Of a DNA stretch of 64,000 nt, positions 17,015-53,100 are shown one piece after another. The stretch is from NCBI RefSeq assembly GCF_964204865.1, contig NC_135264.1, forward strand, positions 1,240,001-1,304,000, in the 5' to 3' direction. Position 1 is the first letter of the stretch; each line of letters begins with the position of its first letter. Under the pieces are notes generated by a model, which ran no database searches, was not told the DNA's origin, and saw only the letters and a program-made list of their open reading frames with translations. Position numbers and translations under genes: made by a program. This stretch comes from Styela clava (Eukaryota).

Positions 17015-17145
17015 ATGGAAACTGCGTACGCTTGTATATGGTTTGGTAGTGTGTGCATAGTTTGGTTTCCACTGTTACCAATTTTACTTCTTTTGTCGCT
17101 GCTATGTTGTTGGTGCTGCTGTTTCCGTAGACGAAAAAAGAGTGG
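17015..17145 (+). CDS. Alternative first coding exon A1: transmembrane segment, Cys cluster and basic stop-transfer (dystonin-a2-like)
   Basis: GTCATGG start with in-frame stop upstream (16976). Encodes [44 protein letters not shown]. Donor GG|GTGAGT at 17146 is phase 2 and matches the next exon. Too short for the ORF track. Confidence 0.8.
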
Positions 17146-20100
17146 GTGAGTTGATGTAACTTAATTTTGTATTCGTTTTTTACGCAACTTAAATTAAATG
17201 CCCTCGTTAAAACTGCCCCCCATTTTTTTAACTACTGCTCCAAGAGTATCCAGAGTATAAGAAAAATGGAACCTATTCATAATATGTCTTTTTACGTTGT
17301 TAAATTGATATCTTTGACTTAAGAAAGAGGCATTTTGACACATTGCACTACATTTGCTAAAATTGTTAGAAGTGCAAATCAAAGTTCTTTTCCTAATATT
17401 CTCCATGGCCGTACTTTATGCTTATAGCACAATTCACAAATTTGCAAGGTTCGTTGTCAGCCACGCTTTATTAAGCTATTTATGGATATCGACTGACTGA
17501 TTGTTTCCAACAAATTATATTGTAGACCGGATGTCATAGAAGTGCAATACGAAACGCAAGAAGAGTTGGAATGGTCCATCTTCATTCAGAAATGGGCAGC
17601 ACGGTTCATTGCATGTGCAATATGCAGAGGTTAGCGAATAACAAAATTAATTTTTCCGAATGTACATAAAAACTATTCATTTACTCTTCTTGGAACGTTG
17701 CGGCTTCTTTGCAACTTTTTTAGTTATTGTTTTCACACCTCGTTCAAGTGTTGAGTTATTTATATGTTATCTATTAGGGCGTTGTATTTATTAATATAAG
17801 GTATCAACAATCCTATTGTCGCCATCAACTAGTTTAAACGCACATGGCAGTTTACCATTCCACAGAAATGCGATTAGTCACCTCTCGCGGAACGTGAACC
17901 GATCATGGCGCAATGTCACTGTCGATCAACGATTCATATCTGACAGTGAATATCTTACTTGCGTCAAGTGTGCTGCATTTCGTTTAAATCAGTATCATTT
18001 GTTTAAATAATATTATCATGATAGTGATACAGCTCTGTACACCCCCTGTGAGGCCGCATGTCAGCCAGAAAAATGCGAAACTTATTGTCCGATCATCGGC
18101 GATAGCAGCAAATTTGCGACCCACATTTCCAAGAACATTTCATTCTGATCCTTTCTTGTCGTGTCATTCTGATTTTCCCGTGTCGGCTTTGATAGTACTT
18201 ATCGCCGCTGTATAATAATTAGTGAACAATAACTTCGCTACTGGCTTCGACATTTGTTGTCTTTTTTCTGTTTTTATTTTTCGCTCCTACGAAAACTTCC
18301 GTCATTGCGTATACCACTAGTACGATGCGCAGCCCGTCAGTGCTGCCATCGGCCCTTAATTTGTATTTACTAGAAATTAATGCTCTAAGTACAAATAGGG
18401 TGCTGACCACCGGGACGTGTGGAATTACCCCAATATCTTAGTGCGGTGCATCATCCCGTCGAGGCGCGCCGGCGTCATGTTTGTTAATTCTGACCGAATT
18501 GAAAATAATGGCATCGCTACTAATGATATATGCCCACAGAAATCTTAGTAAATTTAAATGAAATACTTTATCACTCAATTTGCTGTTTTGAAATTTATGA
18601 ATCGACCCAAAAAAATGTTTATATGTATATCATAGGCACTGGAAATAAGTAAATAAATATTCATATCGGAAACATAACTACACAATTTTTACGCATTTAT
18701 CGAAAGGTGGCTGCAAATTCTCTCGTGTTCGTATGAAGCCATTCAAGCGTTTGATTCAACAACGTGCGAGTACATTTCATTCAAGTCGCACAGATCACGT
18801 GTTACTATGTATTCAAATAGTAAAACGCCACACGAATATTCCAATATCCGATTTGATATTCGAAAATTTTGCAGTAATTACAACTTGCCACAACAATTAG
18901 CTTAAATCTGAGAATCTTTGAAACTTTCGAAAAACAGTAATTCTTTGTTTTATTTTTGATGAAAATAACCATGTAAGTGTGACTAGTTACTCAGAACATC
19001 ATGAAGACGCATACACAAAATTCTTGGTCACTAGTGGACATTGTCGGTAGTCCCGATGAATCGCTGAAAGTCATAGCAATTCCAGTGTTATTTAATGAGA
19101 AAAATACACTTTAATATATAGTTTCGTTTTAGCACTGTACATTACGTACGTGGGTGGTTTGATAGCCATTAGTAATGGATTAAGCTCTAAATGATGATAA
19201 TCCAGGTATGATTTGGTCAACAGACATGATTGTATGAGAGAAACGTTAAGTTATACGGTACTTGGCACGTACTCAATTAGTCAGTTGAGTGGAGAAATAA
19301 TTGGAATTGAGTTTTTCCTTTTCTTAGATATTGTTAGAGATTATAAATTTATATTATTATTCATTCTTATTAAATAATGCCTTATTATTTCAGACTCATG
19401 GAACATACTGGGGACAGAAGAAGAAGCAAAATCAATCATATTTTCTGATATCTTCCAGGTAAATATAGGACGAGACATATGGCATCAAATTCATTTTGCG
19501 TTCTACATGCTCCATAAAGTATCTGTCACAATGGCATATATGCCTATTTATGTGCGAAACTTGCCATCCAATCGAAGCTTATGATTTTGTATTGTTAAAA
19601 TGGAGATCTACGTAAAAACAAAAATCTTTTTCATGGATGCAGGCTTATTTTGAAGAGGAATTTGAGAAAAAGAATACAATCAAGTGGAAAGACAGTGGAT
19701 CAGGTGAAGATGGTTCTGGTGTGAGAAGGCGAAATGTCGCAGAAAAGAACGAGGAAGGAGAAATCGAAGGACAGGTTCGTGTGCGATGTGTGTAGGGTCG
19801 CTTTTCTACTTTGTGCCTTTACGTTACAGGTGTTATTCGTTTTTTATCACGCGAAAAACTTACTCTTTGCAGTCTATTGCTTTCCTCGATGCCGTCGCTC
19901 AAAGTTGAAATGCTGTCCCGAGGGCAATAATATTATTATATCAGATAAATGAGCATTGGTACTTTAATCGTGAAACAACACGTTAAACGCCGATGCTTTT
20001 ATATATTACATTTATGTTTTACGGTTTAAGCTTTACAATTGTTTTGAGTATATTATTAGAAAGTTTATTATTGTCATTGCCATAAATGTACCGCTTTAAT

Positions 20101-23100: not shown

Positions 23101-26100
23101 TCGTGACGGTGATATTACAAGAAATCAAAGATACCGCGATTTACCTGTCCATGAACCCTGAGTTATATTTATTCAATCAAACAATGGATTGATATATAAT
23201 GTGTTATTCTCGTTCTCGCTGTTCTGTATGCCATAATAAACGAAATACATTACTGTACTTTTCTGAAGTAAGCAGGCAGTTCCGGGCCAGATTTAGTGAG
23301 ATACGTGTACCCAAAAAAATACCAGATATTAAAGTACAATTGGCAATACAATCACGATGGTAAAAATTACATTGAACTTTGTTGCTATCTGGTAAGTCAT
23401 AGTAATTTTACGATATTCTGAACATCGTCCTAATGTGTACTCCTTTAATAAATAAAGTAAATTTATGGCATAATTGTTACAAATCGGGCGTTGGCTCTCT
23501 TTGGGCTTATTATTAACCAAATGAGATATGAAACAAAATCTGAGACATTGTTCTTCGTAATATTTCGATTTCTTCCTAGAAAACTTATAAGAATAATTAT
23601 CTATGTAATATTTCAGTGTATTGGAAACTTGTTTTGTTCTAAGATTTTACCTCCTTTGTGTTCATTGGATTTTCAATACGTCTATTTTATTTGATGGATA
23701 TGCTGATTTTATTATATGGATGATGGCTGAGTTTCCTATCACATGACATTATATTATATGGGTAATCAGTACAATTTATCGTTTCATTATTCGCGATAAC
23801 GACTTGATTCCTTTAGCTTTTATAGCGATTTTCACATTTCACCTTCACACGCTCTTTGGTTATAGTAAAAGAGAATTGAAAGCTTCGGTTATTGTTCCAC
23901 ATCATGATTTTGTAGGCTGTGCGCCTGTATTTGAATAGGGACTTAAGCACACATTTGTCTGATGTACTCCGTTTTCATACAAGTTATGATACGTTGTATG
24001 CGCCCAAGCTAATATGCTTCAGCATTTATAACAAAGCATTTATATAGAGTCATAGTACGTACACACAGCAATTTTCGGTACTTGAAACAATCTGCGTAGG
24101 TATTTGACAAGTGTAACCCGAGTGATACCATGCTTTTTAAGTTTCGCGAGTATATATAAATGTCATATTGCAGCCCGGCCAGAAAAAAAACATTTAAGGC
24201 AGTTGAACGGTTGATTCCAGTCAAAGTGTAATGAAGTTTTATGGGTGAGGCATGTCAGTGATTGAAATCGAAGGAGTAAAGCTTGTTAACAGGAATGGAA
24301 CGCCAATTATTTTTTAACAATTTACTCATTTCGTTTTAGATATGATATGTGGTATGCGTTTGTTATGTGTCAAGAATTCTTGACAGGCTAGCTCTAAGTT
24401 GCTCAAAAACGTAACGGAAGAAAATAGTCTAGGAATAGAAAACACATGATATCACATCGACTGCTGAAAGCATGGAATCTCCAGATTCTGTTCCTCGAGG
24501 AGAAAGTCAATCCAAGGACCATCAAAATTTAAATGAGTGCGTCAATCTCGTTCTAGAATCGCAATCAGGCGTGTCGGAATCTGAAAATCTCGAAGAAGAT
24601 GTCTTTTTGAGCCAGGTCATAGATGACAACGATGACGAATTTTCCACTCCTCCCACCACCCCAACAACAACACGCCAGAAGTCAACTCCCCAAAACAATA
24701 AAGTTAAATCGCCATCAATAAGCACGATAATGAATAGAAATCAAACTACCGCATATTGGTGTTCGGATTCACCAGATTCTAAGGTAATTGAGATAATAAT
24801 TGTACTTTAACTCTGTGTTCGTGATCGTGTATTTAGATCTAGACATGTTTCTATTCTGACCTTAATCCAAAATTCAGATAATAAGTATTAGAGAAACGTA
24901 TACATTTATTATGTTTATATATAAAAAAAATTTGTGTCATGTTTTCAATAAATAAATAAAAATTAGGTACTAGAAAAAACATTAACATGACTTGACATGA
25001 AACTTTCAGATATCAATTGCTGATCAAGCAAGTGGAGTTCTAAGTGCTTTTGCTATTTCAATGCTCGAGGTACGTTATATTGTTTTGTTTAAAGCCTAAT
25101 TCAAAACATTTTGTGCACTAATCGCCGAGTCGGTGTGAAACAGTCCGCGCATCTCAAGTTATCAGGCAAAAACTACGAACTTACTAGAAATAAGATCAAT
25201 CAGTTAAAGTTGAATAATTTACTGATGACAAGACATGTGTAGTATGCGAGTTGTCGAAGTATAGATATGCAAGCATGCACTCCAAAGAGTTGACGAAATA
25301 TTCACAAAAATATTTGTCGCATTTTACAGGGTATAAAATATGACACAGCTATAATGATTCATTACTGTGCAATACAGCGGCGTTTCGATATTTTTAATTG
25401 ATGTAGAAATCATACTGAAGCTAACGGCCACATATTTGTAAGACTGAGATAACCCTATTGTGCATATTTGACTGAGCACTTCAACTTAATCTTTGCAAAT
25501 AATTTAGTTCATTGGCATGATAGATAATTTGGTAGACATAATAAATTCATGTTATATGAGGTCAAGTTGTAGTTGTCTTACTTATCAAATATATGATAAA
25601 CAAATGTACATATCTTGATACAAATCTCTGAGATATATTTTTATAAATTATTTTATTGCCTGCTATTTCAATATTGAGTGAAAATGAAGTTATGTTTATA
25701 AATATGCAATTACTTCAAATTCCACATTGGTTATTGAACACAGTAAACTCTGGGAACGATTCAATGGTTTTATTATACATAATTTCGTCTGAGATGGTGA
25801 TTGCTTTCGCAGGAGAATTTAGACATCAAATACGAATATAAATTCCCTTTTTTTTATTCATTTTTAAGTCTTGATTCTTCTCCATATCGTTTCCTGACTG
25901 TAGACCGCGAACGCTCTTGTTGAAACGTTCGTATTTCTAGATTATAAAAATATGTTAAGCCTATCCCACAATAAAGAATATACTCTATCTCTGGGACGTG
26001 TTTTCTTTTTAATACAAACAATTTGAGACGAACACCAATTTGCTCCAGCTGTAATTCGTTCAATTATTAGTGACATATTATAATGACGAACTTTCTGCAG

Positions 26101-29100
26101 GCCACTATAATAAAATTTTATGACTTTGAAATCATACCATATGCTCGCATGTAGTGTTGGCTCTCGGATTTCGTAATTTCACTGTCTTTCTAGATTCATG
26201 AATTTTTTATAGCACGCATGATAACGCTTTTACTGCCTCACCACCTCAACGACTAATAATATGAGTGTGTATTTTTGTATGAATCAAGCTATATCACGCC
26301 TCAATGTAACATTGGGCATAATTATTTGTTCATTTTATCCTACAAAATTGGTTTCGCAATGGGTATTTAGGGAATTTACATACTTCTTCCGAGCATGTAG
26401 GTCACGTTCAACTCAGTTTCATTTCGCAATGCATGTCCATCTGGACGTTTTCCCGTTTTGCGATTTCCCCTTTTTCTTGCAGTACAGCTCTTATCAATAA
26501 TGCATGCACCCCGCTGCGCAAATGCGTTCCAACTCACAATAAAGACGCGAAGACTTTGGAAAACGCGGGTATCTCTTTCATGCGTTTATCGTTTATCGAT
26601 TTTTTTGTTGTTAGACTTCGTCTCAAAAACAAATTTTCATTTAATAGTAGACGACTACTGATCGCACTGATCTTGGTCTCAAGTGTTACTGTACAAGCCC
26701 ATAGTTTACAGTGGGTGATTTTTAGGTAGATAGTCTCTAGATTTGAAGCATTTGATTGAAATACATTAGGCTAGCAGGTTATATATATGTCACCGTACAA
26801 GGTCTGCGTTATTTCAATTCTTTGGAATTCTGGACATATCAAGAACCTTTCAAGAAATATTTGTCGGGTTTCTGTTGTGTTTTCGCCGTTAAACTTGCGA
26901 AACATGTTTTCATATGGGAATTGAGACCACATAAACGGTTATTTGGCTTGCCTCTGCTTTACCGGTATTTCTGTTATTACTCATTGAATCAAGTCCAAAT
27001 CGTTTCTCGAAACGGCTTTAACGTTTAGCCAAGGATAATTATCTCTGGCGAATTTGAGAAAGAAGCGCTAATTAAGCTTGTACCAATAATTGTTAAAATA
27101 AATTGAGACTTCTTTAGCTGTACTGGAGCTAGGACAAAAATATATTAAAATCGCCCAGCTAGAAACGTACTTCACATTGAGACTTTACAAACTGAGCAAA
27201 TTGAAGGGATAGCTTATAGAGTTCGGAAATATCTCGAATATAATCAGTTTGTTACACAGATTGGATAAAATGATGTTTTATCAGTGTATGCGATTATGAT
27301 TTACGTTTAATATAAACTCTGTAGACAATTGTGTGACTTATTAATGAAAGATGACGGATGAAAAGAAACATGAACAAAAGTATGAAAGCTTGAATCTCAA
27401 TTTGTTTACGGAGGCTGCTTCTGACTACAAAGTCAACTCGCACAGTAAAAATGTTCAAGAGGACAAAATAAATGTAACGGAGAGATCGGATTTGGAAATA
27501 TATGACAATCAATATGGATTTAACGTTTTCGAAGAAAAAACTAACAACGAAATTAATATGGTTATCAGTATAGATTCAGATACTGATGATCATTCTCCAA
27601 CAGCTGAAAATGTTGAAGGTAGGAATAGCGATCGATTAAAACAATCGTTGTCCAGTCAAACCCTTTCTCCCGATACGCCCTCTGGCGTTGATAAAATAAT
27701 GGAAAATATCGATCAATTAATTCAGATCAAATTAGCCATATCTGAAGGGAACATCCCAAATGATGCTTCGTCGGATGAGATACTAGATTATGTTAAAGCA
27801 GATACAATGGAAATGAGGAAAGAAAACAACACTACTCGTCGTTTCCAGGATGTACAAGAAGCAAACACCCCAGAAGAAGGAATCCATGAAAACCAACGAT
27901 TATCTATTTTGAGTGTCGATAGCTCAGCCGATGGAGATTTGGTAATCGATGAAAATACCATAACTGTAACTGAACCAAGCAGTTCTTACGAAACAACAGA
28001 AAATACAATCAAACTTTGGGATAAGATGCTAGGAAATCGCGATACACATTATGATAGATTCGTATCGTCTTGCCCAGAAAAACTTTATCTGAGTTGCACG
28101 AGAGATACCGCTGCGGCCAGCAATGAGTTGGCTGGCACACAAAATATTCATTCTCGTTCGGGTTCTTTTCATAGCAACGATGGAAAATTTGAACTAGTCG
28201 GAATAAGCGGAACTTGCAAAATTACTGGAAGTAGTAGCGTGACCTCTGATCTTTTTCGGTCGTCTGGCCAGGAAAGTCCACAAAAAGATGACTCATCCGA
28301 TGAGATTGAAGATATGTGCCTTGACGCGATACGAAGACTGTCTCTGAGCGCCCCAGAGCATCTTTCGCGTCATAATAGTCGGGACGAATTTGACAACAAG
28401 TCAACAGCTACGCCTATTACTACAGGTACCGCCTCACCTTTTATGTTTTCTAATGAGGCACAAGAAGCACTTGGTGATGACGAATTAAGATATAGATTTG
28501 CTTTTTGTTCTGATAATAGCGGCCCTACAACTGATGTTGAGAGTGCATATGATAGAGATATTGATATGTTGTCGGAGGAAGGATGTCTCGATAGAGACGG
28601 CATTCTGAAAGAAGAAGATCTACGACGTGCTATTTTTGATGCGTTTCACGATCTCAATTGCAGTCACACACATGCGACTTCTTTGCAACCGGGCGTCACT
28701 TGTGATTCACTGGAATTGGTCGGAGATTATGACGTTGTGCCAACCGACAATTTACCTGGGGGTGGAAATAAGAATGAAGGGACTGGTGATCCAGTCAAAT
28801 ATCATTCTTCAGATGACGACTGTAATTTTCCGCTCCACCATAGTAATAGTAAATCTTATGCCCCTTCAAATGGTATTCTCTTGGATAATGAACGACGACA
28901 TACATTGCGGAGCCTCTTGATGAATGCCCCTCCAGTGCCAATACTACATCCTCATGCCAGTGCCGATCATAATACACCTGATGGAGATAATATTAACGAA
29001 AATGCTTCAGAATGCAATGGTACGGATCTGGAAATGGATGCAGTCGATTCTATATCATTTACTGCTTTAAAAAACCACAGAGCAAATGAGGCCAGCACTG

Positions 29101-38100: not shown

Positions 38101-41100
38101 GCTTTTTTGATGCAATTGTTTTGTATATTGCATTTTTTTCGAAATATGAGTATATACCGTAGTTGTGTCATCAGTGCATGTATATGACCGAGATACGCTG
38201 AGAAACTAAAATGACTTGCTTGCCCTCTATACTTAGCTCGTATGAGATATTGAGGGATTGCACCCTTATGCTCAATTCAACCCTAGCACATATTTCCTGA
38301 TTTCTGAAATGGTAACAACGCTCCTTAAAGTATTCCATTCTTGAGCAGAACCGTATCTAAGCAGTTCATAATTCATATCAAGAATTCCGTATCTCTATTG
38401 TAATAAGAATGTCTGTAATACTCTGTATATATACTCATATATATATATACGGGAATCATCCGACGTTTCTGAAACGCTATAGGTGTGCGTGGTCGATAGT
38501 AACACGGTGATTTTAAGATGTTTCACGACAGAGTCGCGATTTTGCGAGTACTAGTTGACCTATTCAAAAAAAATAACTTCTAATATGGAATTTGTTTCTG
38601 CTCGTGAGATTGCATAGTTGATGTTAATTCTTGTATTATTTATGAGAATAATCCAATGGAAATATCCACATCGGAATTTACATCAGTCGTGTATGTACGA
38701 AAGAAGTTTACTCGTTTTAGTGTTAGTTTCTACACTGTTGTCGTCATAGTTCCTGGTTTTCACATTATACTCGCCCTCAAATTAGCAGCTGTCCGATTCG
38801 TGGGCAACCGAATCAGATGTTAGACTCTGCCTGTCATGTCTATTATTGCAATCGCTTCTTGTTGTCTGCTGTTTGCCACCTCGTCAACGGGTTGATATTT
38901 CTTGTCTGGAAAGGGAAACATCACAGCTCGTTAGTCTGTTCAGTTATTTGTGATATGCCCTTGAAACTAGACGTATGTTGGATGTCGGGTTTAGTATAAA
39001 CTAGGTACTTCGAATGATACTGAATTCGAATATGTAGCTAGCACGTACCCACACGTAATTGATTGTTTTTGTTACCAAGTCTGTTGAGAAAATGGAGCGA
39101 TTGTCATTTAGATTTTGTTTAGAAATGTATTTTATGCAGCAAACCATGAGTTTGGAAGATAAGCAGTGATTAGGAAAGGGAAATTAAAAATATTTTACTG
39201 CAAACAATTTAATAACCATGCAACACCAAAGTCAGTCAAATAATGTAAAACATTTTAATCTGACGGAGAAAGCCCGTTGAAAGTTTATGTTGTGGATGCT
39301 GCGGCAGAATATTTTCGCCCAACCATAAACATAATTTGGTATTCGTTACAGGCGAATTTCACCTCGCCTTGGGCACTGCATATTAACGATACGTTTTGCA
39401 ATGAGACATGGCAAAATAATAAAAATTAATTTTGTGGTGAAGCGAAGTTGGTTACAACATTTGGGGCGTTGTGTAAAATTGTTTCTAACTATGTAGGTTG
39501 TGAACCTGATACTATGAAATGCAGTTATGGTCAAATGAATACTTCATGAACGCGATTCTAAATTCATTTGATTTAGTTTGCTATGGGCGTTGACTTTGAT
39601 GCGGTAGAATGGCACAAACTAATAAGATCGCAATGAAGTTTTGACATACAGAGGCCTATTCCAGCTGTGATTTCAAACAAGTTATGGAATTGGGCATATG
39701 GTTTACCTAGCGATACTTGCTGGTTATAGAATTAGTTTATGAATCTATATATAACTTAGAAAGATTGAAAACCCATTCTATTGCCACATCCCGTCTTCTC
39801 TTTTTGGTGTGAGCTAATGTGATTTAAACTTCGCATAAATATTTCATTAAACACAGATCGATAGGAAGGAAAATAGTCTATGGTAGCCTGTGAAGCAATG
39901 GAATGTTAGGCCGTCGAGCAAGTCAGGTTGTTTATTTACAGAACTTTTCTGTCAGATTTGGGAAATGATATTCCATCGGAATATTGGTTAAGCATGGCCC
40001 ATTTATCAACTAAACATGTTGGGCGGCGTTGCTAAATCGCCCGTCATCAATGAAAAGGGGTTTTGAGTACTAGTCGAGTATACAGTCACAAAATTGATAC
40101 TAGACCAAGAGTTGATCAAATACACGTTGCATAGTGTGACAACCATATACTGTACCAGAGTAGTTTAGTATCATCGAAGCTTAATACTAGAGCTCTTGAA
40201 AATAGCTGAAATTTATTTGCCATGGTAGTTGATGTCATGACTTTTAAATTTCCACTTAAAATGAAAGACGGGTTGAAAGAGTTATATATTGTTGGGGCAT
40301 CACACACAGACTTTTATATATTACATTTGCTTAGGAGACAAACTGCGCCTTTCCCAAGTAAAGTCATGAATTGCGTTTAGGAAATCGAGACCATTGCGGC
40401 ATGTTTAGTTTTAAATCTAATTCTCCCCAGGAACGAGAAATTGATCACATGCATACGTTGCATTGCAGCACATTAATCAAATCTAGAATGATTTTGAGAG
40501 TAAGGTCCATGTGTTATGAGGTTTAAGAATTTAACCGCCTTAGTTGAGATGGAAAGTAGAAAACCATTGGAAATGATTCGATTTGGTAGAAAACTTCTGT
40601 TCTTATTGGTGAAGTCGACTTCGCGTAAAATGAAATTTCGATCTATGACTGGATTAAGATTAACTCGAAGGCTAGCCAGTGTTGACTAATTGAATTAATA
40701 GAATAAATAGCACTAAATTCACGAGCTTGCTTTCATTGTATCTTGTTTTGTTTTAAATCAGGTGTTAGGACCGTAGTGGGGTGGTGTGTAGCTCGTTGCT
40801 TTGTGATATCGGGCATTCTTAAAACATCAACTCTTTAATTTGGAATTTCGAGATTTGGCCTATTTTGGGTACATATCACCGACACCACCTTAATTTTAAT
40901 TTCCACACGCGACATCGTCTGCGTTATTTACGAAGCCGATGTTCAACATTTAGAAGAAGAGTCCCATACAAAAATTTCCCGTTTTTTTAAACGGCTTCTG
41001 AGTGCTTTTCCTGGGCTCTCTTTTCGCCGTTACTACTGTAGCGCAGGAAGCATCATGGACTGGAACGAAGCCGCTTGGAGCGATAGGGAGCATGGAACGA

Positions 41101-44100
41101 TTACCGAGGAGGAACAGGAGGCCATGGATGCTTATGTGCTAGCAATGAGGTGGTTCAGAGGTATGTTGTGTCGTTGCGGTCTTTGATCCCGCATACTGTG
41201 TTTTTGAAATTTTCTGATTTTCAATATTTATTTATTTGCACGAGCTTCAATCGCAGTGATCTTTAGCGATGTCATGCTCGCAGTATCGGTTAGGTGTGAC
41301 TGAAAAAGCAAGCTCTTATAGAGAAAACATTAGTGGGGTTTGTGGGTTCAACCGAGAGGCGCATTTAATGTTAGTATTATTCCAAAAATTATCGAATGTG
41401 CATTTGAAGAGCATGGTATACAATACGCAGTGGCGTAGCATCCACCCCCGCAACCCCTGCGGTCGCGGGAGGGCCCACAGCGCAAAGGGGCCCAAGCGGT
41501 TAGAATTTAGAAATTTAAACCGCAAAACCAAACGTTGCATTGCAAAACAAGTAATGCACATCTTATAACGTTGGTGTTAGTTCTGCTCAAATCGTTTTGT
41601 TACGTAACAATGTCAGGGAGTCGTCGATTTTCGGCGTCTTGTGGTTTGATCGCACCGGCAAAATTAGGAAGGCTGTCAGAATGATGTCGAAAGCAAAGCC
41701 TCTCAGTGGCGCACAGAAACGCAGAAAAGGGGCAGAAGAGAAAGTACGTATGAAAAAAATTAAAGTAACCAAGATAAACGGAAAATTTTTGGTTACCATT
41801 GCTTTCTAATAGCGACATGTTATGCTTTTTGACGAAATAAAAAAAAGCGTTGTTTTAGCTTATGTCCGAGAGTTTTTAGGGTCATTTCCACGAAATATTT
41901 TTGCGGGGGGGGCCCACGAGAGTCTTGCTACGCCACTGACAATACGTATAAAAGACATGTTAGTTTTTCGAACATTTATAGATATTTGACAGTTCTGGGG
42001 ATATACCTACTTATCATTGCTTCATATCACCCATCTTAATTAAACGAGTCAACTTTATTTCTCACCCCTTTTATCTAACATAATAGAGTTCAATTAACCC
42101 GCGCCCGAAAAAAACCCAAAGCGCTAGTGGCAGAAAATTGTATCAGTTATCCTCGTGCTTTTGTGCTATTTTTGAGAAAATAAATGCAGTGAAGCGGAAC
42201 GCTATTTTCATTTCGAGCACATCCTTGAGTAAACTCAGTGTTATACCAGGGTTTCGCGCCGGTTATATGAATATTTTAGATACAGTTCGATGGGTAGCGG
42301 TATACTGCGCATTTCAGTACAGGTGGGTGGAAATAAAATCGGTATTGTAACGTTATAGTAAAAGCAAGACGGATCACTAGGGTGTAGCCACAAAGATTTA
42401 GTTATATACATTGAGTTGTGTTTTAATATAGTAGTCGTGCTGTATAACACTATGGACGCTAACTTCGACCATAATTCCTGGCCTCAAATCAAATAGTGTT
42501 TTCGCTCCAGGTAATTTTGTCGTTTAGTCTGTGAACTTTTACGGATATCTTTAGGCTATCTCTACACTACATCGTAAATACATCAATTGTAATAATAACA
42601 TATGCCGCTATTCATGTAGCGGTCGTGTAATAAAAGAAAACGTACCTTCTTTCCGCTGCACAAACATCGGGTCTATTATTCCAATGGTAAATATACTTCT
42701 TGACTCCAGGAAAAACATTGTATAAGGGTATAGTAAGGGCGTCTCAGGTATACGGTCACGCAGATTAGTGTTACTGATGAATTTTTAAAGTTGATAACAT
42801 TGAAGATTCATCATTACAACACCCAGAAATAGAATCGAGGGCGGTTGAGCACCAGTTTTTTTTTAAATTTAATTTGTTTTTATCAAAATAGTCCATTTGC
42901 CATTAAAACTGTCATGAATATCATCTCACGAGGGGTGTCATAAGCTGTTTAGCGATAGTGGTGAATGATTAACCCAGTTAGACATATTTGTCATGGGTGG
43001 CTAGGATGTTTATGTGGTGTTTCAAAGAGGATTCTAATATAATTTGTTTTATAATATTTTAGCGCATTCAATGGTATTCGCTGACAAAGGGCGTTCTTTG
43101 GTATTTCATAGCTTTGTTAAATGCATGAGTGACATGTAATATTCATAGATTAAACGCTCTGGGTCAGTTGGTCAGTTGTTTGATATCTCAGAGTAGATTC
43201 CCCGGTACCGATTGATCAATTTATTGTCCTATTGATCGTTGACGTACGTAATTTTACTTTCGAGTTTTGTTTAGTTGCCCAAGATATGATTATCGGATTA
43301 TAATGTTTTCGAGTATGTAATGAGGACCTACGTTATCGAGATGGCATAGCTTACTATACGTTTTGATATGAGCTGGTTTACAAGTTAGCACTAAAGTAGT
43401 AAGGTAGTTAGCTTGTCTATCGCTTTGTTCGTTCAGTGCAAAAAATAGGCCAGGAGAATAACCTGGGATTCAATTTGAGCATTAGGAAGCAATCAAAATT
43501 GAGTGGCCAAATTACAACATTAATCGTTCATTTTGTTGATTTCCTAGCTCAACTGGTTTGCACTGGGACATCGTGCAATATCCAAGTACTGGAATATAAT
43601 CCCATATTAGACTAGCCGAACTCTTTAAAGTGGGAATTAAAAACAGCTGAAACTTTGCGTTTTAGTGAGGGAAAGGGATAGGGAGGTGCGAGTTAGCAAC
43701 TAAACATTCGAGCTTCTTCAGTTTATAGGTTTTATTGGGCAATGAAAGAAGCAGCGTGGAATTCACGCCGTTCGAAGTGATTATTCGTGACCGCTCATCC
43801 ATGAAAATGGATTTCGCGTTAATAGTATTCGGGAATATTGCTGAGCGTATTAAAATATTTTTGTCTTAATCCGTGGATATTCCGTTGAATTGCCCGGGCA
43901 TGGTTAGCGATGGCGATGAATTTTGGAACCTAATGGGTTATATTAGATAGAAACAGATGAAAGTGCGATATAATATTACTAATATAGGTAACATGCTGCT
44001 GATATAAAGCCCCGGGCGAAACTGAGGCAGAAATATTCTATTTATTTCGTTAGAAAAGATTATGGAACGCTGTGCAGAAGTTTGTTTTTATCGATATGCC

Positions 44101-47100
44101 GAGAAATTTTACACCAGGTTTGAGATATCCGCGCACGCCCATTTTTTTGAATAACTTGCGCACTTTCGTGGCTCACACGATAGAATATCTCAAACTACAG
44201 AATTTGGTCTTCATCATTAACGTAGAAATATGCGGTTGGAGTATGTGCAAACAGAGTCCATGAGTCATGAGAATAGCCTATTAAAGAAGCACTAAGAATG
44301 TATTTATCGAATGCAGTTGGGTATCATGGACTTGTTCTGAACATTTCGAAATCCATGGTACATTATCTCAATTTATTAATACATTTAGGGGGACTATTAT
44401 TCGAGTTCAGATTTTGGGAAAGATTAGATATGCAGAATGTTTATAGACTAGTTGTTCAATGTAAGGCCGCATCATAATATGAAGTATATATTTTCTGAAT
44501 TGATCAATAGTAGCTTCTGGGGGCAACAATATATAGTTCGTTGGGGCTACTAATGTAATCGCGTAAATTTTTAATTCAATTAGGATCCTAATAATGCGAA
44601 ATAAAATCGCATACTTATTTGGAGTATCGAATTGAAAAATAACAATAATTTTGTATTTCTGCTTATAGAGAAGCTTATGGAAAGCTGGATATTGTCTAAG
44701 TGGCTCAGATAATGCGACATAATTTTTAGTTGTAGTCTGTGTCTGTTGATAACTAAAGCAAATCATGGGGTCACAATCAAGTAAAATCGAAGGTACATAA
44801 CCGGATCCGGATTGTGAGCTTTTGTAATTGTATCCAACTTCCATAGCCTCCGCCCAGGAAGCATCACCAACGGACCAAAATATAAATTTGTTTACTCATA
44901 TACAACTGGACTCCGAAGAACATATTCTCTTCGTTCCTCTCAAGGGAAAACTGAATTTGGAAGCCGACAGGCTACATTCTTTCACCGTAGACGATACTAG
45001 TCAGTACGGTAGTCAGTCGATTCCACTCAGCTGTCTAGAGGTTTTCCAAGTACGTCGTGTAGTCGTAGCAAATACGCCTGTTATACCTGTTGGCATATCT
45101 TGACTAGAAATTTGAAGGTTTCCATCGTGGTAGAGTCGGAATTATTTGAGATGGCTCAGCACTCTTATATTCGATCCTCAACTGGTCAGGACATCATGGC
45201 CAACGTGATAGTAAAATACTGTGGTAAGTACATTACAGAACTGTTGTTTTCAAGGGTGTCAAGGGTTTATGTGTGTAGGTGTGTCAGTGGATTTTGGGGG
45301 AAATCGGTTTCGAATTGTTTCCGCAATGTTCCCACTGTTACTGTTTCCCACGATACTCGGTGAGAGCATGTTTCGAGCTTTCAGGTGATAACCTTTTTAA
45401 ATATGACTAAATTTGCGCTAAAGCAATCTAACAAAAGTACACGGAATGTTGTTATGAACATCTGGCGAATGGGGAATACAGCCGGTTAGTTGGAAGTTTG
45501 TGTTTCTATTACATTTTTCTCATAAAATATACCAGCCGAAATTGTGATATATATGAACCATTGTCGAATTGCATTGATGTGATTCCGGGATGCAATAAAT
45601 TAACAGCGTGCACACAAACATATTCAACGTGAACTAAACTCTGTGCATTGCCTTAAAAATGTTTCCGCGACAGAACGGCGGAAATCTGTATTTCAATCAT
45701 CTCAATCATAAATGAAAACCACGAAGTCACGTTTCAACACATTATTATCTTTCGCCCTCTAACGGACGCTGACGGATTTTTTCGTGAATTTAATTCATTC
45801 CATTTACCATATTTCACACTATTAGGAGAAATTAGTTAACAAAGATGTTTTTCGCTCTATTCGCGCCAAATGTGTATAGCATTAATAAATATTTCAACAG
45901 ATCTATCTCATCGCTGGATATGCGTCGATTGCGTCGATATTTTATTTCCCCATATACGATACAGGGAAGTACAGAGTTAAATCTTGATTTGTGTATTCCG
46001 AGAAGACGCCTCTCATAAGAAGAAATCACGTTATTCATTCAAGCGTAGATTCATTTGAATTTGATCGGTTCAATTTTGTGGTTAATGTATAATAAAACAA
46101 AATTTATGTATAGTTCAGTGCATGGAATTTAATGTATAGTTTCGCGACGCTTGCTTTGTTGTTTCGAGAATCATGTGTGCTTTTTGGGCGTTTACTATAA
46201 CGTTGAAAGGTCACTTCTCCCGTTTCAAACTTTACTAACGAAAGTACTGTTGAATTGTAACGCCCAAGATTTCGTTTAGCCAGTGGAGAGTATGAATGGG
46301 GACCTAATGTATCGTATTGGCGTTATGATTTTTATAGCATAGCTGAAATCGCTCGCTTTTTTGGGAAATCCGCGTTAGGTTGGTTATTATTTTGGTAGGG
46401 GTGTTCAAAATGAATTCTTACGCAATCAAGATATTTCTTGGTACAATAGCACTATTACCATTTTTTTGACGATTTTCTGAAATATCAGTCTCTCTCGTAT
46501 AGTTGAATTGTCTTAAAACATTGTTTGGTCTTTAGAGCTGTGAGTCGTAAACGCAGCAAATGTATCTTTTATAGGTATTTATTGCAGAACATTTAAATAT
46601 GTAACACATTTCCATGTCAGTTCACTTACATGAGCTGCCTGTAGGCAATTTACTCGAAGAAATAAAAGAGCTTTATTATCCGCGCAGATATTTCGAGAAC
46701 ACTGCCGAACTATGTGTTTTGATTTTGCGTGTTCAACTGTTTCGAATTTCCACTACTCATTTATTTCATCTATTTAATAGTGAGAGAACGAAATGATGTT
46801 GTATTGTCGTATTTTATATCTCATTGAGAAGGAGCATATAGTTTTGAATAAGATACAAAGAGAAATCGCATAGATGATCCAAGATTCGACAGATAAAAAA
46901 AAACTTCAGTATTCAGTATAAATATTATTATATAACATTCCGCGGTCAAATTATGGCGGCTAGAAAAAATTTCACGAAAATTCAGTGTGCACGGGTTTTG
47001 CACAATGCGGCAAACTTATATACAGTAATCTTATTTTAAATACTTACGCGAATTAATTAAAACATACTCTCAGAAGTTTTATAATAATACCCATTTCTGC

Positions 47101-50100
47101 GATGCTATTTTTCGAATCTTTGCAGTTTTCGATTTAATAGGAGCAACAATTATTGTTTGTCAGACCAGGATTGCTCGGTAATTAATTCAATTGTCAGCAT
47201 TGTGTTTCAGGCAAACTAAAGAGTTCACGCACTGCAATAGGCATGTACCTATTTTAGTTCGGAAGTATGTAACGTGTTCTGTAGGTACATTGTGCGCTTG
47301 GGACTATAATAATATGCTTTCAAGTCTTGTTTGCTCTGGGTATCACAGTGTAAGAAATAAATTGGCTTGGATGTTGGTGGATGACATCGAGAAATCTTCT
47401 TGACCCACTTTTACTCGGAAAACCAAATGAGCTGAGCTCACAAGTGGTTAATTGTTATGTCAAAAATATAATAACGTCAAATAAAAAAACGTTTGAAGAA
47501 AATATCATTCATTCAATAATAATTTTCTTTCAATGTTTGATGATGAAATGTCCTTTAATTTCAGTCGAAGCACATGTTCGCTCTCACCCACGTAATATAT
47601 ATTTTGTCGCTGCAGCTATTCCAAATTGACTGTCGTTTAACATAGGTGGACATAAAAATTCCGCTTGTAAAATGATTGAGTGGTCACTAAGTATCACTTT
47701 TGTGTTTTTTAAATGTTTGCGGAATATATTATTATAAACACTGTTTAAAAGAGCACCGAATTAACATGAGGCCGAATGTATGTATAGCCGCACTACTATA
47801 TGTAGTGTTCGTTTGTTTCCAATAGCCCGCTGTAAACGATGAAAAATTTACTTCGCAATTTCAGTAAATCGAACAGAACTTCCAACATCTCGATAATACT
47901 GCTAGAAGGGAGAGAAAGAGACCGAGGGATATAAACCGGCTTCTGCTATTCGCGCTTAAGTACACACTACCCAATATAAAGTTAAGAACAGCTTAACTGG
48001 TGTCGATCCACTTCTTCGACGCCAAGTGGTGCCTGCTTTTATAAGGCCGATAAAAAGCTCCAGGACCGTTACATATTAGTATGGTTATTCAAGCGAACCT
48101 TCTGTGCGGCGTACACTGTTATTCGTTTTTTCAGATGAGGATAAAAAGTTTTGCGTGGATTTGGCATTCTATTTGGGAGCGACTTTTCGTTTAGGTCAAT
48201 CTGGTTTATTTTCAATGTCGCGAAATAGGATTTTGTGACATTTTCAAACTCGCAAGTTTTGCGTGGACGGTCACGTGGTTGTCTCGCTATTTTCATAATA
48301 GCAACTCTCAGGGCGCCATATCGATTTTTACCTTCAGAAGTTAAATAATGATACTGTAGAAAAAATTGTTTAATAATACAACTTTTTGTAATATTCAATA
48401 TGGAGTACCTCTTATCAATCGATATCGCCAGCTTTTTGTCCCTAATTCTTTACTACACTCCATACTTGGCGTTTTATAATTCCATATCACAATCCTGGCT
48501 GATGAGGCAGTTTACTCGGGAACTATGGACAAATTTCATTCAATTTTTTAAAGCGTGGTAGTGAATGTCAATAATTGTTCAGCAAGCAAAGAAGGAGATA
48601 ACCCTCTGCGAGTTTGTGAGAGAATAAAAAGAGAAAAAATTTGGAAAAACTGCTTTATGTTTCTTTTTCAAAAAGACATTACTAAAATGTGTTTTCGTAC
48701 CCGGCGTATTTTATCATCGTTTTCTTTTCGAGACGTGTAGCATTACTAAAATGACGATAGTTTACGTTTTGCGCCTAACTAACATATGAAGCGTGAAAGC
48801 TAGTTTTGCCTACGGGGCTTAGCGGACGACAGTGCCACGAGGCGTTATGGCGTTTCTTATAATAATATATCGTACCGGTATGATAGATTTCAGCAATAGT
48901 TTTAACAAATGCAATTGTAAGGCTTTTTACTGAGGAAATATGCAATTGAACAGTGAAAGGATTTTTTGATTGATGAACTCAGTGGTGTGATTGGACATGA
49001 ACTACAGATGAATCGGTTTACTTTCATTAAATACTCAGTTGCATTGTTGGTTTTGCATTTCTTGGCGTTGAAAGCCGTTTTGTTTAAGTTAGATGACTGG
49101 AAGAAACTTTCTTGTAACGTGATCTGGTCATTTATTGTTTCTTTAGGTTAGACGTAATGTTGATGCCGAAGGGCCATTTAGTGGCCATTTATCAATCACT
49201 TTTTGAAGACGGGGTTTGTGTAGCACAAAAAACAGTTCGCGGACCTCATGAGTATATTACCATAGGTAGTGGAGGAGCGCCTATACTCAATTTACACGTG
49301 GTAAAAGCTATGCAGTCACTGACTTCAAAGGGTGTTGTTAGACAAACATTTTGTTGGAGACATTACTACTGGACATTGACTGATTCTGGAATACAGTACC
49401 TTCGTGACTTTTTGCACCTTCCACCAGAAATTATACCCAATACTTTGAAACGTGGTGTTAGGGCGCCAACTGCTAGGTTAGGTGCAGGGAGAGGTCGAAC
49501 GCTACAGAAACAGTCGTCTGACGTTGCGGAACAAAGTAGGAACCAATATCGCGGAAAAGTGGATTCTCCCAGACCAGCATTTGGGCGTGGGAGAGATAAA
49601 GTCGCAGATGCCGGTGCGGGCTCAAGCGCCTCGTTTAGTTTCTATTCACGTCAATCGGGCATGGAATTTCGCGGTGGGTACAGAAGAGAGGAGCAAATGG
49701 AACAAGCAAACGCGGTAAACGGATATGCCGGATACAATGGGAACTGGCGTAGCGAAGGCGGTGAAGCGACAAAGTATACTAAGGAGAGAGAGGGATATAA
49801 AAGCGAATTACGTGATAATACCAAGCGCAATGAACCGTTCGGCCAGAAACGTGAAAACTTCGCAAAGAGAAGTTATCCGGAAGACGACAGACGGAAATAC
49901 ACGAGCACCGCAAGTCAAGATGGAAACAATGTAGACCAAAATTGGAGGCAGAAATCGCAAGATATCAGCTCAGAAACGAGAGATGTCAATCAAGTGACAT
50001 CGCCTGAAGAAATTGTTCAACCGACAACGTCGAACGAGAGCGGATCAACTTTCCTTAAAGTTTCCGAAACGAAAACACATTCGAGGAGTATTCACACAGG

Positions 50101-53100
50101 AGTAGGTGAAGAGGATTACCTTAGTCAAACCACTGTGGTGCAGTATTCAACATCAGTGCGTCAGGAATATACTCAGGAAGAAAAACAAGAATCTGGAAGG
50201 AGGGAGGAAGAGGAGGAGGAAGAAGAAGATATTGATATGTGGCGATCAAGAAGAGTAACTTCGGAAAATCCCGATTACAATGATAGCATTGAATCGAAAA
50301 TTGATGAAGGGAGAGGTGGAATACATTTTAAATTTAGGATTATTATTTCTGTTTCGCAACCTCTAGTGTCATTAGTTATACAAGCTTAATCAGAAAAGGT
50401 TGATTAGCACTATATGAATATATCAGTCGCACTAAACTTCACGTGGTACTTGCGAGAACATTTTAATTCTCTTGAAATTAAGGGTTTAGACGCTATGTAG
50501 TGAACTTTCGTTTCAAAATTGGCTACGCCCTTATTGAAACGTTTATTACTGCTTAGTGCGATGTGTGCATATTATTATAGAAAATGGTACTGGTCGATAG
50601 TTTATAGCCGATTTGCGATTTGTCAAAGCAGTCTTCATGGCTCTTCAGTAAATAACATTTCCTATGCAAACACCGTAAACACGTGTCAGGATAAGAACGC
50701 CACTAGTGCTCACTTTTAATCTTAATGTCCTACCACGTCATGTAAATGGTTTGTGTGTGGGAACATGGAACGTTCAATTTTTCAGTGTTGATTCAAACGT
50801 TAGCATAATCGCCGCGAGTGTTCCGTATATTACCTTTATAAGCAATGCTGTGGTTTGGTTGTCGTAAAATTCTTTTCGGGATTGGATGGATTTATAGTTT
50901 GTATATTTTGAAATTCTTAAAGCTGATTTTGGCTTTACTAAGAATTGAATTTATTTTGCTATGGGAATGAACCGAAATGGCTCGAGTTTAACGTTTCAAT
51001 GATGCCTACGGCATGTGCGTGTGGTCGATGTCAAAATCACTTTAATATGGATAGAAGTTGTCGTAAATCATATTTATAATATAACGCGACTGCTTCCCAT
51101 GGTTGGGTTTCTATTTCTTCAAAGTATCCACGATAAAAAGCTACTAATTTGCTGTCGTTTTTTGTAGTGTCATTATTGAAGAAACAAGTATAAGATTTCT
51201 ACTTATACGTGTCAAAACTTCATATTATTGTTCGATCACAACGGGCATTAATAACAAGCATTATCCTATATAAGATATCCCAGGCTAATCTCAATATGTT
51301 GAATTCATTGATATTTCGCCACAGGGTTCTGTAGGCTTGTGCGTTAATGAAACTCGATATCGACCTAGCTGAATTAGCAAGGTATAATATGAATGTTGTA
51401 TCAACACATAATAGAATGCTATTCCATGTATATGTATGAGTGACTCGAGACTAAAGAATTCCATTCGGGTGTATCGTAGCGTTCGAATCTCTTTATTTCG
51501 CATCGAAAAAACGATTAACTAGCAATTTTGAATGAGTTCATTTCAGTGCGATTTCATTTTTCAACCAACTTGTATTTTTTGGCTTTGAACTGATGACAAA
51601 GTCAACACTGTATAACACTTTGAATTGGACATGGAATTTGACGAACTTGATATAATTCATAGTTTCAACAAATTAATTTTTATTTCAGATGAACGCGACA
51701 AAGTACAGAAAAAGACATTTACAAAATGGATAAACAAGCATTTAGTCAAGGTATGTGTATATTTTTTAGATACTTTTGACATCGCAGTACATGAGCATAA
51801 ATTGGTTCAGTCGAATCTAATAAGAAATATTTTCAGTGTTATAGTTCCATCTTCGACTATAAGTATTTAAAATGACTGCATGGGATTGCGCAGCGACATT
51901 TATGGGAGGGATATAGTAGGGTAAACCTTGCATTTTATGCTCAAGTTTTAGAATTCCTAATAACCAACACCAACAACAAACGACCCGTATTATCGTAAAT
52001 TACCAGCTCTTTTATTATCTCGTTGAAGCCACTTTGTGAGCATAAATGTGTTGTAGACGTGAACAACTTTCCTCGGGCTATTGTATTACTTTATTTTTTT
52101 TTTAATGACTTACCTACCAACTGGTGTGTCAATGGTGGCTTTGCTTGGTGATTAAAATCCGCTGTATGGATCCATGTTTCGTAGGAGAAGAATACTTATT
52201 ATTGACTCACTTATGGACCAGCCATGAACGCATGATGACATTCGCGCCTGACCTTGATTGCTCATATATATCATTGCGGGTATACTCTTCTTTAAGGCGG
52301 CTATTTCATAGGACTTCTTTTCCTCAGCTACCTTCTGATAATGTGAAGACAAAATCGAAATCCCCGTTTTACGCAAGCCCTATTATTTGTAATTAACACA
52401 GTGCCTTTAGTGATTACTCGTTAATTGCCGATTCCGATGCATCGGTCGTACGTATTCGAAAACCGTTATCATGACACCAGCTACCAAATAACCCATAACC
52501 TCTTTTGTACTTCTGGATAAAAACGATTTTCGAAGTTCCCAGTTATGTGCAGTGCAATATTACATTATATTAATTTATTACAGACCCGAAGACAAGTGGA
52601 TAATTTATATGAAGATTTGAGAGATGGCCACAACTTGATCGCATTACTGGAAGTTTTATCTGGCGAAACCTTGGTGAGATTATTTTCGTTTTATGTAATC
52701 AGTTTAGTCGCTCAAACAAGCGTAAGTTTTGTATGGAATACTCTTATAGAGAATAGAATTAAATTTCCCGCCAAAACCATATTCGTTGCTTTGGATTATT
52801 GTTTGTTATTTCACTTCTGTATTAGGACAGAAATAATACGTTTTGATAAGATTCTCTCGTTTCTGCTTTTGTTGAAGGCATATAATTTTGTTGGAGTCCC
52901 AATTATTTTTTTGCGAAGCAGCGTGTTGTCGACTTTCCCATGGTTATAGATCTTCGCGTGGTCTTCGAAAAATCCAGCAAGTGACAACGTTTACTTTTAG
53001 AAATGGAAATTTTCATTAAGATGCCGATTTTGGACTTGAATATAGTTTTCATGAAATCGCGTGACAAAATATTGACGACTACTTCAGTCATTTACATTCT

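Follow-up and report, generated by a model that had tools for sequence, protein, structure and literature searches.

The S10-like first exon of plectin is conserved across vertebrates, and to our knowledge its origin is obscure; in the literature searched, we found no report of an S10-like plakin exon outside vertebrates. The plectin gene chooses among about a dozen first exons, and non-coding exons lying further upstream are spliced into its exon 1c (PMC8468861). In dystonin the N-termini determine localisation, with a transmembrane domain at the N-terminus of BPAG1a2 (PMC3279385, PMC3352950). Drosophila short stop and C. elegans vab-10 likewise produce N-terminal isoforms from several promoters or 5′ exons (PMC3352950).

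Here we analyze a window of 64,000 nt from the stolidobranch ascidian Styela clava, in which a sequence-only reading had placed an array of interchangeable plectin-type and dystonin-type N-termini on one plakin gene, possibly an ancestral repertoire later partitioned among the vertebrate paralogs. That observation and its interpretation hold in part. Positions are those of the window unless the contig, C19, is named.

A single plakin locus and its common exon

The window covers the 5′ part of the sole CH1-CH2-plakin (spectraplakin/plectin-like) gene in the genome, whose conserved body is encoded by the following features.

51689–51750, + strand: common exon of 62 nt, encoding the start of CH1 (21 protein letters) and beginning in phase 1 (sequence; convergence of all joints)
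52587–55560, + strand: exons for the remainder of the actin-binding domain, CH1 and CH2 (tblastn of Pogona plectin)
56156–64000, + strand: plakin-domain exons, with the SH3 exon at 60008–60289 (tblastn, Pfam SH3_10)

Exons within 51689–55560 align with residues 61–306 of Pogona plectin at 49–80% identity (tblastn), and the best PDB matches for the actin-binding domain are the actin-binding domains of plectin and MACF1. The 3′ boundary of the common exon coincides with the point at which Pogona plectin isoforms diverge, right after ..NKHLMK. Residues 808–948 of Pogona plectin match the SH3 region of the plakin domain (tblastn), and SH3_10 (PF17902) matches at C19:1300005–1300127 (60005–60127 of the window) and nowhere else in the genome. 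In the whole-genome search the plakin SH3 exon and the Pfam SH3_10 model each matched this locus alone, which bears out the assumption of a single plakin locus with no second CH1-CH2-plakin gene. Plectin repeats (C19:1313–1338 kb) and a GAS2 domain (C19:1374–1376 kb) lie downstream on the same strand and contig, suggesting a gene that may span at least 119 kb, through the plectin repeats to GAS2.

Upstream of the common exon, all the exons listed by the sequence-only reading were found, with phases as claimed and only small slips in their coordinates. As exons and phases were verified in the sequence, the two-tier phase logic proposed for them, in which phase-0 ends fit a linker exon and phase-1 ends fit the 62-nt exon, is real at the sequence level.

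Exons shown or proposed to join the common exon

Four 5′ exons end in phase 1 and fit the common exon, and one of them is preceded by a trans-splice acceptor.

36376–36520, + strand: linker exon, homologue of plectin exon 1c, with phase-0 acceptor TTGCAG|AGA and phase-1 end ..AERAVIRIA + G (tblastn, RNA contigs)
41055–41160, + strand: candidate first exon of 36 codons, ending ..TTCAGAG|GTATGT in phase 1 (break-points of contigs)
45151–45223, + strand: candidate first exon of 24 codons, ending ..ACTGTG|GTAAGT in phase 1 (break-points of contigs)
49145–49146, + strand: AG of the spliced-leader (SL) trans-splice acceptor of the S10 exon (X4 contig)
49147–50315, + strand: S10 exon, with a 10-nt 5′ UTR, coding sequence from 49157 (386 codons + 1 nt) and donor GAG|GTGGAA in phase 1 (Pfam, RNA joint, orthologues)

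Two of these exons are of plectin type, as had been proposed. The 49157 ORF matches S10_plectin (PF03501) over residues 3–99 (E 1.8e-32; 111.7 bits, cut-off 26.9), and the remaining S10_plectin matches in the genome all fall within the RPS10 gene, a single locus that has introns. The exon encodes an exapted, intronless, near full-length RPS10 copy followed by a tail of about 210 aa. Its orthologues in four related species (P0001, P0002, P0003, P0005) are conserved up to the donor (..ESKIDEGR + G), and 7 of its 13 polymorphisms are synonymous, where 21.5% would be expected. For the linker, a tblastn search of the whole window with the N-terminus of Pogona plectin 1c gave its best match at exactly 36385–36519 (E 3.7e-6, 40% identity over 50 aa), aligning with the 3′ end of the exon (..LPWN.., ..AERAV(I/L)RIA).

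Transcript evidence comes from contigs of four runs (X1–X4) from three studies, covering 45751–51750. These runs were labelled RNA by guess; splicing, the SL and a contig depth confined to exons in that region argue for RNA. Junctions onto 51689 were looked for, and both the S10 exon and the linker exon are joined there. The S10-to-common joint 50315|51689 (GT..AG) occurs in 4/4 runs. In two runs, X1 and X2, the final 10 nt of the linker precede 51688; the 11-mer at the linker end occurs once in the window, and its joined form is missing from genomic DNA. The S10 exon is therefore used in plakin mRNA, in a position and of a kind equivalent to exon 1 of vertebrate plectin, and so is the linker, the homologue of plectin exon 1c. 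Both are spliced to the common exon in RNA contigs, and the gene has several alternative N-termini, as the earlier reading had claimed.

As an intronless RPS10 copy located in an intron, the S10 ORF might instead be a nested retrogene or pseudogene outside the plakin mRNA. The 50315|51689 contigs contradict this, with an in-frame GT..AG joint to the CH1 exon in four runs; moreover, the ORF extends 210 aa beyond the RPS10 homology to end exactly at the plakin donor, and the motif next to that donor is kept in four other species. We regard such a retrogene as extremely improbable.

The S10 mRNA receives its 5′ end through spliced-leader trans-splicing, as seen in one run (X4), and the acceptor precedes the ATG by 10 nt. 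The X4 contig has 19 additional nt before 49145; these, together with the AG, are identical to the 3′-terminal 21 nt of the stolidobranch SL as published (25 nt; compared from Botryllus, Boltenia and Halocynthia). An 18-mer of the SL has 1367 copies in this genome and 5 in the control, and GT follows one copy.

Break-points of the contigs at the common acceptor give pieces of two lengths, 33 nt starting 4 nt upstream (X1 and X4) and 31 nt starting 2 nt upstream (X3 and X4). The ends of the additional exons are deduced from the lengths of these contigs, not read as letters. These are the pieces that k=31 graphs would yield if further exons ending ..AGAG and ..TG joined the common acceptor: the 33-nt contigs require an ..AGAG exon besides S10, and the 31-nt contigs a ..TG exon besides the linker. 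In X4 the depth of the shared 33-nt piece is 108, compared with 28 for the S10 contig. The 41055 (..CAGAG) and 45151 (..TGTG) exons match these ends, which points indirectly to their being joined to the common exon as well. In the 15 kb from the linker to the common exon, a control scan found phase-1 'ATG...GT' candidates on both strands (7 on +, 3 on −), so that the short exons carry no significance by sequence alone; the 45151 exon is the sole phase-1 candidate there with a donor score of at least 5. No similarity of either exon to plectin exons 1f or 1a was detectable by tblastn.

Candidate upstream modules and a proposed mechanism

Upstream of the linker lie further candidate modules ending in phase 0.

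17015–17145, + strand: candidate transmembrane (TM) first exon, encoding a hydrophobic segment at the N-terminus, clustered Cys residues and the basic run RRRKK, with its best donor, GG|GTGAGT, at 17146 (sequence)
19643–19774, + strand: candidate final exon of the TM chain, acidic, with a phase-0 end (sequence)
24472–24783, + strand: candidate first exon of 104 codons, AAG|GTAATT, phase 0 (ORF)
27351–30950, + strand: giant candidate exon of 1200 codons (3.6 kb) with a strong donor, AAG|GTAAGG, phase 0 (ORF)
34963–35001, + strand: candidate first exon of 13 codons, CAG|GTAAAT, phase 0, no better than chance (sequence)

The hydrophobic segment at 17015 has a mean hydropathy of 2.67 over 19 aa and is followed by RRRKK, the shape of a signal anchor. 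Over both strands of the window, a TM segment, a basic tail and a good donor come together once, by criteria set post hoc, and at least 10 alternative in-frame exon paths could form the TM chain. The proposed dystonin-type TM module goes as far as a candidate ORF of convincing signal-anchor shape. The 24472 ORF (112 aa) closes 9 codons past its donor. The 27351 ORF reaches 1205 aa in DNA of about 36% GC, a length far above chance, and the exon is present in one copy in the genome; a search among proteins of 660–2100 aa returned no homologue. Neither of these two ORFs has a Pfam match.

We consider alternative N-termini via phase-1 5′ exons joined to the 62-nt exon to be the best explanation as a whole, and a probable one. 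Alternative 5′ coding exons would be joined in phase 1 to the CH1-starting exon, so as to place varied N-termini on one large protein body, and the 41055 and 45151 exons may be joined to it likewise. The linker could accept phase-0 exons from upstream (the TM chain, 24472, the 3.6-kb exon, 34963); if no coding exon preceded it, translation might start from its own ATG, as in plectin 1c. By analogy with vertebrates, the different N-termini would target the cytolinker to different sites in the cell.

Alternatively, the proximal tier alone may be real, made up of S10, the linker and one or two of the short exons. The linker acceptor would then serve SL trans-splicing with translation from the linker's own ATG, 24472 and 27351 would make up a gene of their own, and the TM ORF and the 34963 ORF would have arisen by chance. 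The joints come from contigs over 45751–51750, the stretch covered, and none involves an upstream module; the adjoining S10 exon is demonstrably SL trans-spliced; and codon 3 of the linker is an in-frame ATG with ..SG.. after it, resembling the MSG.. start of plectin 1c. The path of the TM chain is ambiguous, and the giant ORF lacks a homologue, plakin-related or other. However, 24472 and 27351 have good phase-0 donors a few codons before the ORF closes, which is exon-like and unlike terminal coding sequence, and the phases of the upstream modules fit the linker acceptor. The TM ORF has a complete signal-anchor shape and then a strong donor, and in vertebrates splicing of upstream exons into exon 1c is known (PMC8468861). 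We judge a proximal tier alone to be unlikely.

Origin of the S10 exon and comparison with known systems

In the S10 tree, tunicate plakin S10 and vertebrate plectin S10 form two separate, well-supported clades on a backbone without resolution. Constraining them to one clade costs 7.3 lnL (AU p 0.055), and placing the tunicate clade with chordate RPS10 costs 9.1 lnL (p 0.094). RGGY is found in lamprey and fish plectin S10, in tunicate RPS10 and in tunicate plakin S10, and RGGF in vertebrate RPS10; the occurrence of RGGY in plectin S10 against RGGF in vertebrate RPS10 indicates that the plectin capture is old. The S10 data are compatible with the suggested ancestral repertoire, and also with two separate captures.

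Ascidians and vertebrates may each have gained an RPS10 retrocopy before the same exon, an independent capture to which we assign somewhat less than an even chance. Ribosomal-protein retrocopies are common. The two S10 clades are fully supported and are not sisters in the best tree, the one-clade constraint carries the cost given above, the strict shared derived residues of tunicate and plectin S10 amount to one, and no common motif was found in their tails past the RPS10-like part. Yet the one-clade tree survives at 0.05 and placement with chordate RPS10 is worse too. Both exons are near full-length intronless copies from the RPS10 ATG, joined to the same target exon in the same phase, and the RGGY/RGGF pattern implies an old plectin capture. 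An S10 exon captured once and then lost from DST and MACF1 also requires fewer unlikely events.

We tentatively propose, as a conjecture that may well prove wrong, that the last common ancestor of tunicates and vertebrates already carried S10 and 1c-type exons on its one spectraplakin gene, with S10 kept after the vertebrate duplications by the plectin lineage only. The choice of N-terminus in ascidians would be made largely as SL trans-splicing at internal acceptors competes with cis-splicing from exons further upstream on one long pre-mRNA, and not by a promoter for each exon.

S10 and 1c-type exons in the same splice position mean either that these N-termini are more than 500 million years old, predating the vertebrate duplications, or that the same retrocopy was recruited twice; either origin speaks for a functional role of S10 on a cytolinker. 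In ascidians, N-terminal targeting isoforms, which in vertebrates are spread over PLEC, DST and MACF1, can be studied on a single gene, and a trans-splice acceptor can define an 'alternative first exon'.

The ascidian gene closely resembles vertebrate PLEC (exons 1, 1a-1g joined to exon 2). In both, the alternative first coding exons all join an exon starting D-ERD(K/R)VQKKTFTKW, one of them is S10/RPS10-derived, one is of 1c type and ends ..AERAV(I/L)RIA, and the common exon ends at the identical residue. An S10 exon spliced in frame to the CH1-starting exon is also found in Pogona, piranha and lamprey plectin, and the four long S10-bearing proteins whose names were looked up (lamprey, fish, lizard) are all plectin, with no dystonin or MACF1 among them. 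Unlike in PLEC, the 5′ end of the ascidian S10 exon comes from spliced-leader trans-splicing, its tail past the RPS10-like part is unrelated, and counterparts of exons 1a or 1f are not detectable. The ascidian gene also probably continues to a GAS2 domain, a domain missing from placental plectin; GAS2 does occur in many non-placental 'plectin' models, which are about 7000 aa long (compare PMC8782857 on MACF1CTL).

With dystonin (BPAG1a1, a2, a3) and MACF1 the ascidian gene shares CH1-CH2 and the plakin domain, and would share plectin repeats and GAS2 if these downstream domains belong to it. The candidate 17015 exon would resemble the BPAG1a2 N-terminus in shape; a search directed at DST sequences brought up plectins only. 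Like short stop and vab-10, the gene is a single invertebrate spectraplakin gene with N-terminal variants. We know of no S10 or 1c-type exons in those two genes, and unlike them the ascidian gene has specific exons in common with vertebrate plectin.

A multi-start plakin gene and its common exon

The locus is a genuine multi-start plakin gene, with two of its N-terminal exons proven, two likely and four unproven. All the exons listed in the sequence-only reading, with their phases, are present in the sequence, their ends slightly corrected. Database searches took the exons singly. The common exon, the linker and three candidate 5′ exons lie at these window positions:

24472-24783, + strand: candidate 5′ exon, phase 0 end
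27351-30950, + strand: giant candidate 5′ exon, phase 0 end
34963-35001, + strand: candidate 5′ exon, phase 0 end
36376-36520, + strand: linker exon, phase 0 start behind TTGCAG, phase 1 end
51689-51750, + strand: common exon (62 nt), start of CH1, beginning in phase 1 with AT

As the common exon begins in phase 1 with AT, every phase-1 exon ending in G makes the Asp of D-ERDKVQKK.

RNA contigs of four runs from three studies (X1-X4) were examined over 45751-51750, where all forms converge. These runs were labelled RNA by guess alone, yet their depth is confined to exons and their contigs are spliced. The 3′ end of the S10 exon (CDS 49157-50315) is joined to 51689 in 4/4 runs, with removal of a 1373-nt GT..AG intron, so this exon belongs to the plakin mRNA. 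In contigs of two runs, CCGTATCGCT precedes 51688; with a following G it forms an 11-mer found once in the window, at the linker 3′ end. The joined linker/common-exon sequence, searched as a 27-nt junction pattern, is absent from genomic DNA, and together these observations place a splice between the linker and the common exon. The plectin-type part of the earlier reading stands.

In X1 and X2 the S10 contigs reach no further than 51707, and pairs of short contigs differing by one letter continue from there, indicating that the 62-nt exon carries a common polymorphism at about 51708. Contigs of depth 2-3 in two runs also cover 46413-46742, in the intron between exon 45151 and the S10 exon, where no obvious ORF or splice site was seen; they may stem from the S10 outron, from intronic RNA or from a repeat.

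Fitting of the phase-1 exons to the common exon had also been proposed for exons 41055 and 45151 (named by their starts). Contig joints establish it for S10 and the linker, and contig break-points make it likely for these two. A Logan contig ends wherever k=31 paths come together. The exon 3′ ends read ..GGGAGAG (S10), ..TTCAGAG (41055), ..TCGCTG (linker) and ..ACTGTG (45151). Joining of all four to 51689 would require the graph to have a 33-nt piece reaching 4 nt upstream, from the two ..AGAG exons, and a 31-nt piece reaching 2 nt upstream, from the two ..TG exons. X1 contains the 33-nt piece, X3 the 31-nt piece and X4 both; X2 has neither, its S10 and linker paths continuing undivided for 11 nt. 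The X4 ..AGAG piece has a depth of 108 versus 28 for the S10 contig, so most of it comes from another ..AGAG exon. These pieces support, without proving, joining of 41055 and 45151 to the common exon, as the distinguishing letters were not displayed. By sequence alone the two exons are unremarkable, with seven comparable short-exon candidates on the + strand and three on the − strand. Plectin 1f had been considered as a counterpart of 41055, and plectin 1a as one of 45151; both were rejected, as tblastn with the first exons of Pogona (lizard) plectin gave no match at either exon.

The same tblastn search of the whole window placed the Pogona 1c exon exactly on linker positions 36385-36519 (E 3.7e-6), anchored by ..LPWN.. 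and a terminal ..AERAV(I/L)RIA. Plectins alone made up the best 120 matches of a region search that used plectin 1c as its seed. The linker has its own ATG at codon 3. Vertebrate exon 1c receives splices from three non-coding exons (PMC8468861), a precedent for a 1c-type exon accepting upstream exons. A weak second 1c match (E 0.019) lies within the giant exon at 28758-28910, where ..SNGILLD..R..LR aligns to ..SNGTVLDPAERAVLR. Either decay of a duplicated linker motif or chance could account for this match.

The S10 exon and its spliced leader

Residues 3-99 of the S10 exon match Pfam S10_plectin (E 1.8e-32). Homology to RPS10 extends to ..FRGGY at about residue 175, and the ORF then continues for about 210 aa up to the donor. 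The true RPS10 gene lies on a different contig and has at least three introns, whereas the plakin S10 exon has none, identifying the latter as a retrocopy. That it is an RPS10 retrogene merely nested in the locus is ruled out by the spliced contigs joining it to the common exon. Four proteins from Logan assemblies share 40-52% identity across the whole exon, all ending ..ESKID(E/D)GRG at the donor. Among polymorphisms of the exon in the RNA runs, 7/13 are synonymous against 21.5% expected, including 3/3 inside the RPS10-like part. The S10 exon is coding, under constraint and conserved within a clade.

S10 contigs start at the acceptor before 49147, and one bears a spliced leader (SL): its 19-nt overhang and the AG after it match exactly the last 21 nt (3′) of the 25-nt SL published for the stolidobranch ascidians Botryllus, Boltenia and Halocynthia (PMC3795323, table 1 and supplement). 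The earlier reading of the organism as a tunicate is correct. Another S10 contig crosses this acceptor unspliced, as an outron would. SL trans-splicing sets at least one alternative 5′ end of the plakin gene. The SL 18-mer has 1367 copies in the genome versus 5 for a reversed control. Copies lie in unrelated flanks, and one (L001) has a GT after the SL and on that account resembles an SL RNA gene. Many copies form same-strand pairs 6.3-6.5 kb apart, and three (L003, L007, L008) have left and right flanks in common, suggestive of an SL sequence placed in the terminal repeats of a retroelement.

Long S10-bearing proteins looked up by name are all vertebrate plectins; one of them is a 6670-aa plectin-like isoform from lamprey. 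In a tree of 43 S10 domains, for which two RPS10 exons of this genome were concatenated, the tunicate plakin copies, plectin copies and chordate RPS10 are each strongly supported on an unresolved backbone, and the genome's own RPS10 clusters with vertebrate RPS10 (support 99/99). Constraining the tree to unite the tunicate with the plectin copies lowers lnL by 7.3 (AU p 0.055), and uniting the tunicate copies with chordate RPS10 instead lowers it by 9.1 (p 0.094). Tunicate and plectin S10 have only one strict shared derived residue, and no shared motif was found in the tails of their exons. RGGY, considered as a shared derived feature, is instead ancestral: it occurs in lamprey and fish plectin, tunicate RPS10 and the tunicate plakin exon, with RGGF in vertebrate RPS10. 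The plectin capture is therefore old, which does not decide the origin question, and we regard a single S10 origin and two captures as about equally probable.

Upstream candidate modules

The ORF of the giant exon (1205 aa, single copy in the genome) cannot be due to chance; six codons ahead of its stop lies the strong phase-0 donor that ends the exon. We found no Pfam domain in it, no paralogue in the genome and no homologue among proteins of 660-2100 aa. At 27345-27351 the ATG of the giant ORF stands directly after AG, with a stop two codons upstream; exon 24472, ending in phase 0, could also splice in frame onto 27351. The candidate TM exon fits the classical form of a signal anchor and is followed by a good donor, with ten in-frame solutions for the onward path. 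A TM N-terminus is documented for dystonin-a2 (PMC3279385, PMC3352950). The array may include a dystonin-type part and may reflect an ancestral repertoire, as the earlier reading proposed.

Gene identity and comparison with vertebrate plakins

The rest of the window, beyond about 51.7 kb, has + strand exons for an actin-binding domain of plakin type and for a plakin domain, and the closest solved structures to the former are the plectin and MACF1 actin-binding domains. The same contig and strand carry plectin repeats (C19:1313-1338 kb) downstream of the window and, further on, a GAS2 domain (C19:1374-1376 kb), making a full spectraplakin spanning at least 119 kb likely. In the 377-Mb genome, the plakin SH3 exon and Pfam SH3_10 match at this locus only. 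The remaining CH2-like matches (48-56% identity), at other loci, are presumably other CH-domain proteins. The locus is the sole CH1-CH2-plakin gene of the genome. The Pfam Spectrin_2 profile matched nowhere in the genome and is uninformative.

Further plectin repeats occur at C4:3704133-3749463 (− strand), C6:5972542-5975175, C6:13905854-13906198 and C9:22902065-22903445. With no CH or plakin-SH3 exon detectable nearby, these may be plakin-repeat-only genes.

The literature searched describes neither S10 nor 1c-type exons for any tunicate plakin. The origin of plectin-like plakins has been placed in the tunicate-vertebrate ancestor (PMC9145010), and PLEC and MACF1CTL have been proposed to derive from fission of a MACF1-like gene (PMC8782857). 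In a region search, GAS2 was present in many 'plectin' models (about 7000 aa) from non-placental species. An ascidian gene combining plectin-type 5′ exons with a GAS2 end fits this picture.
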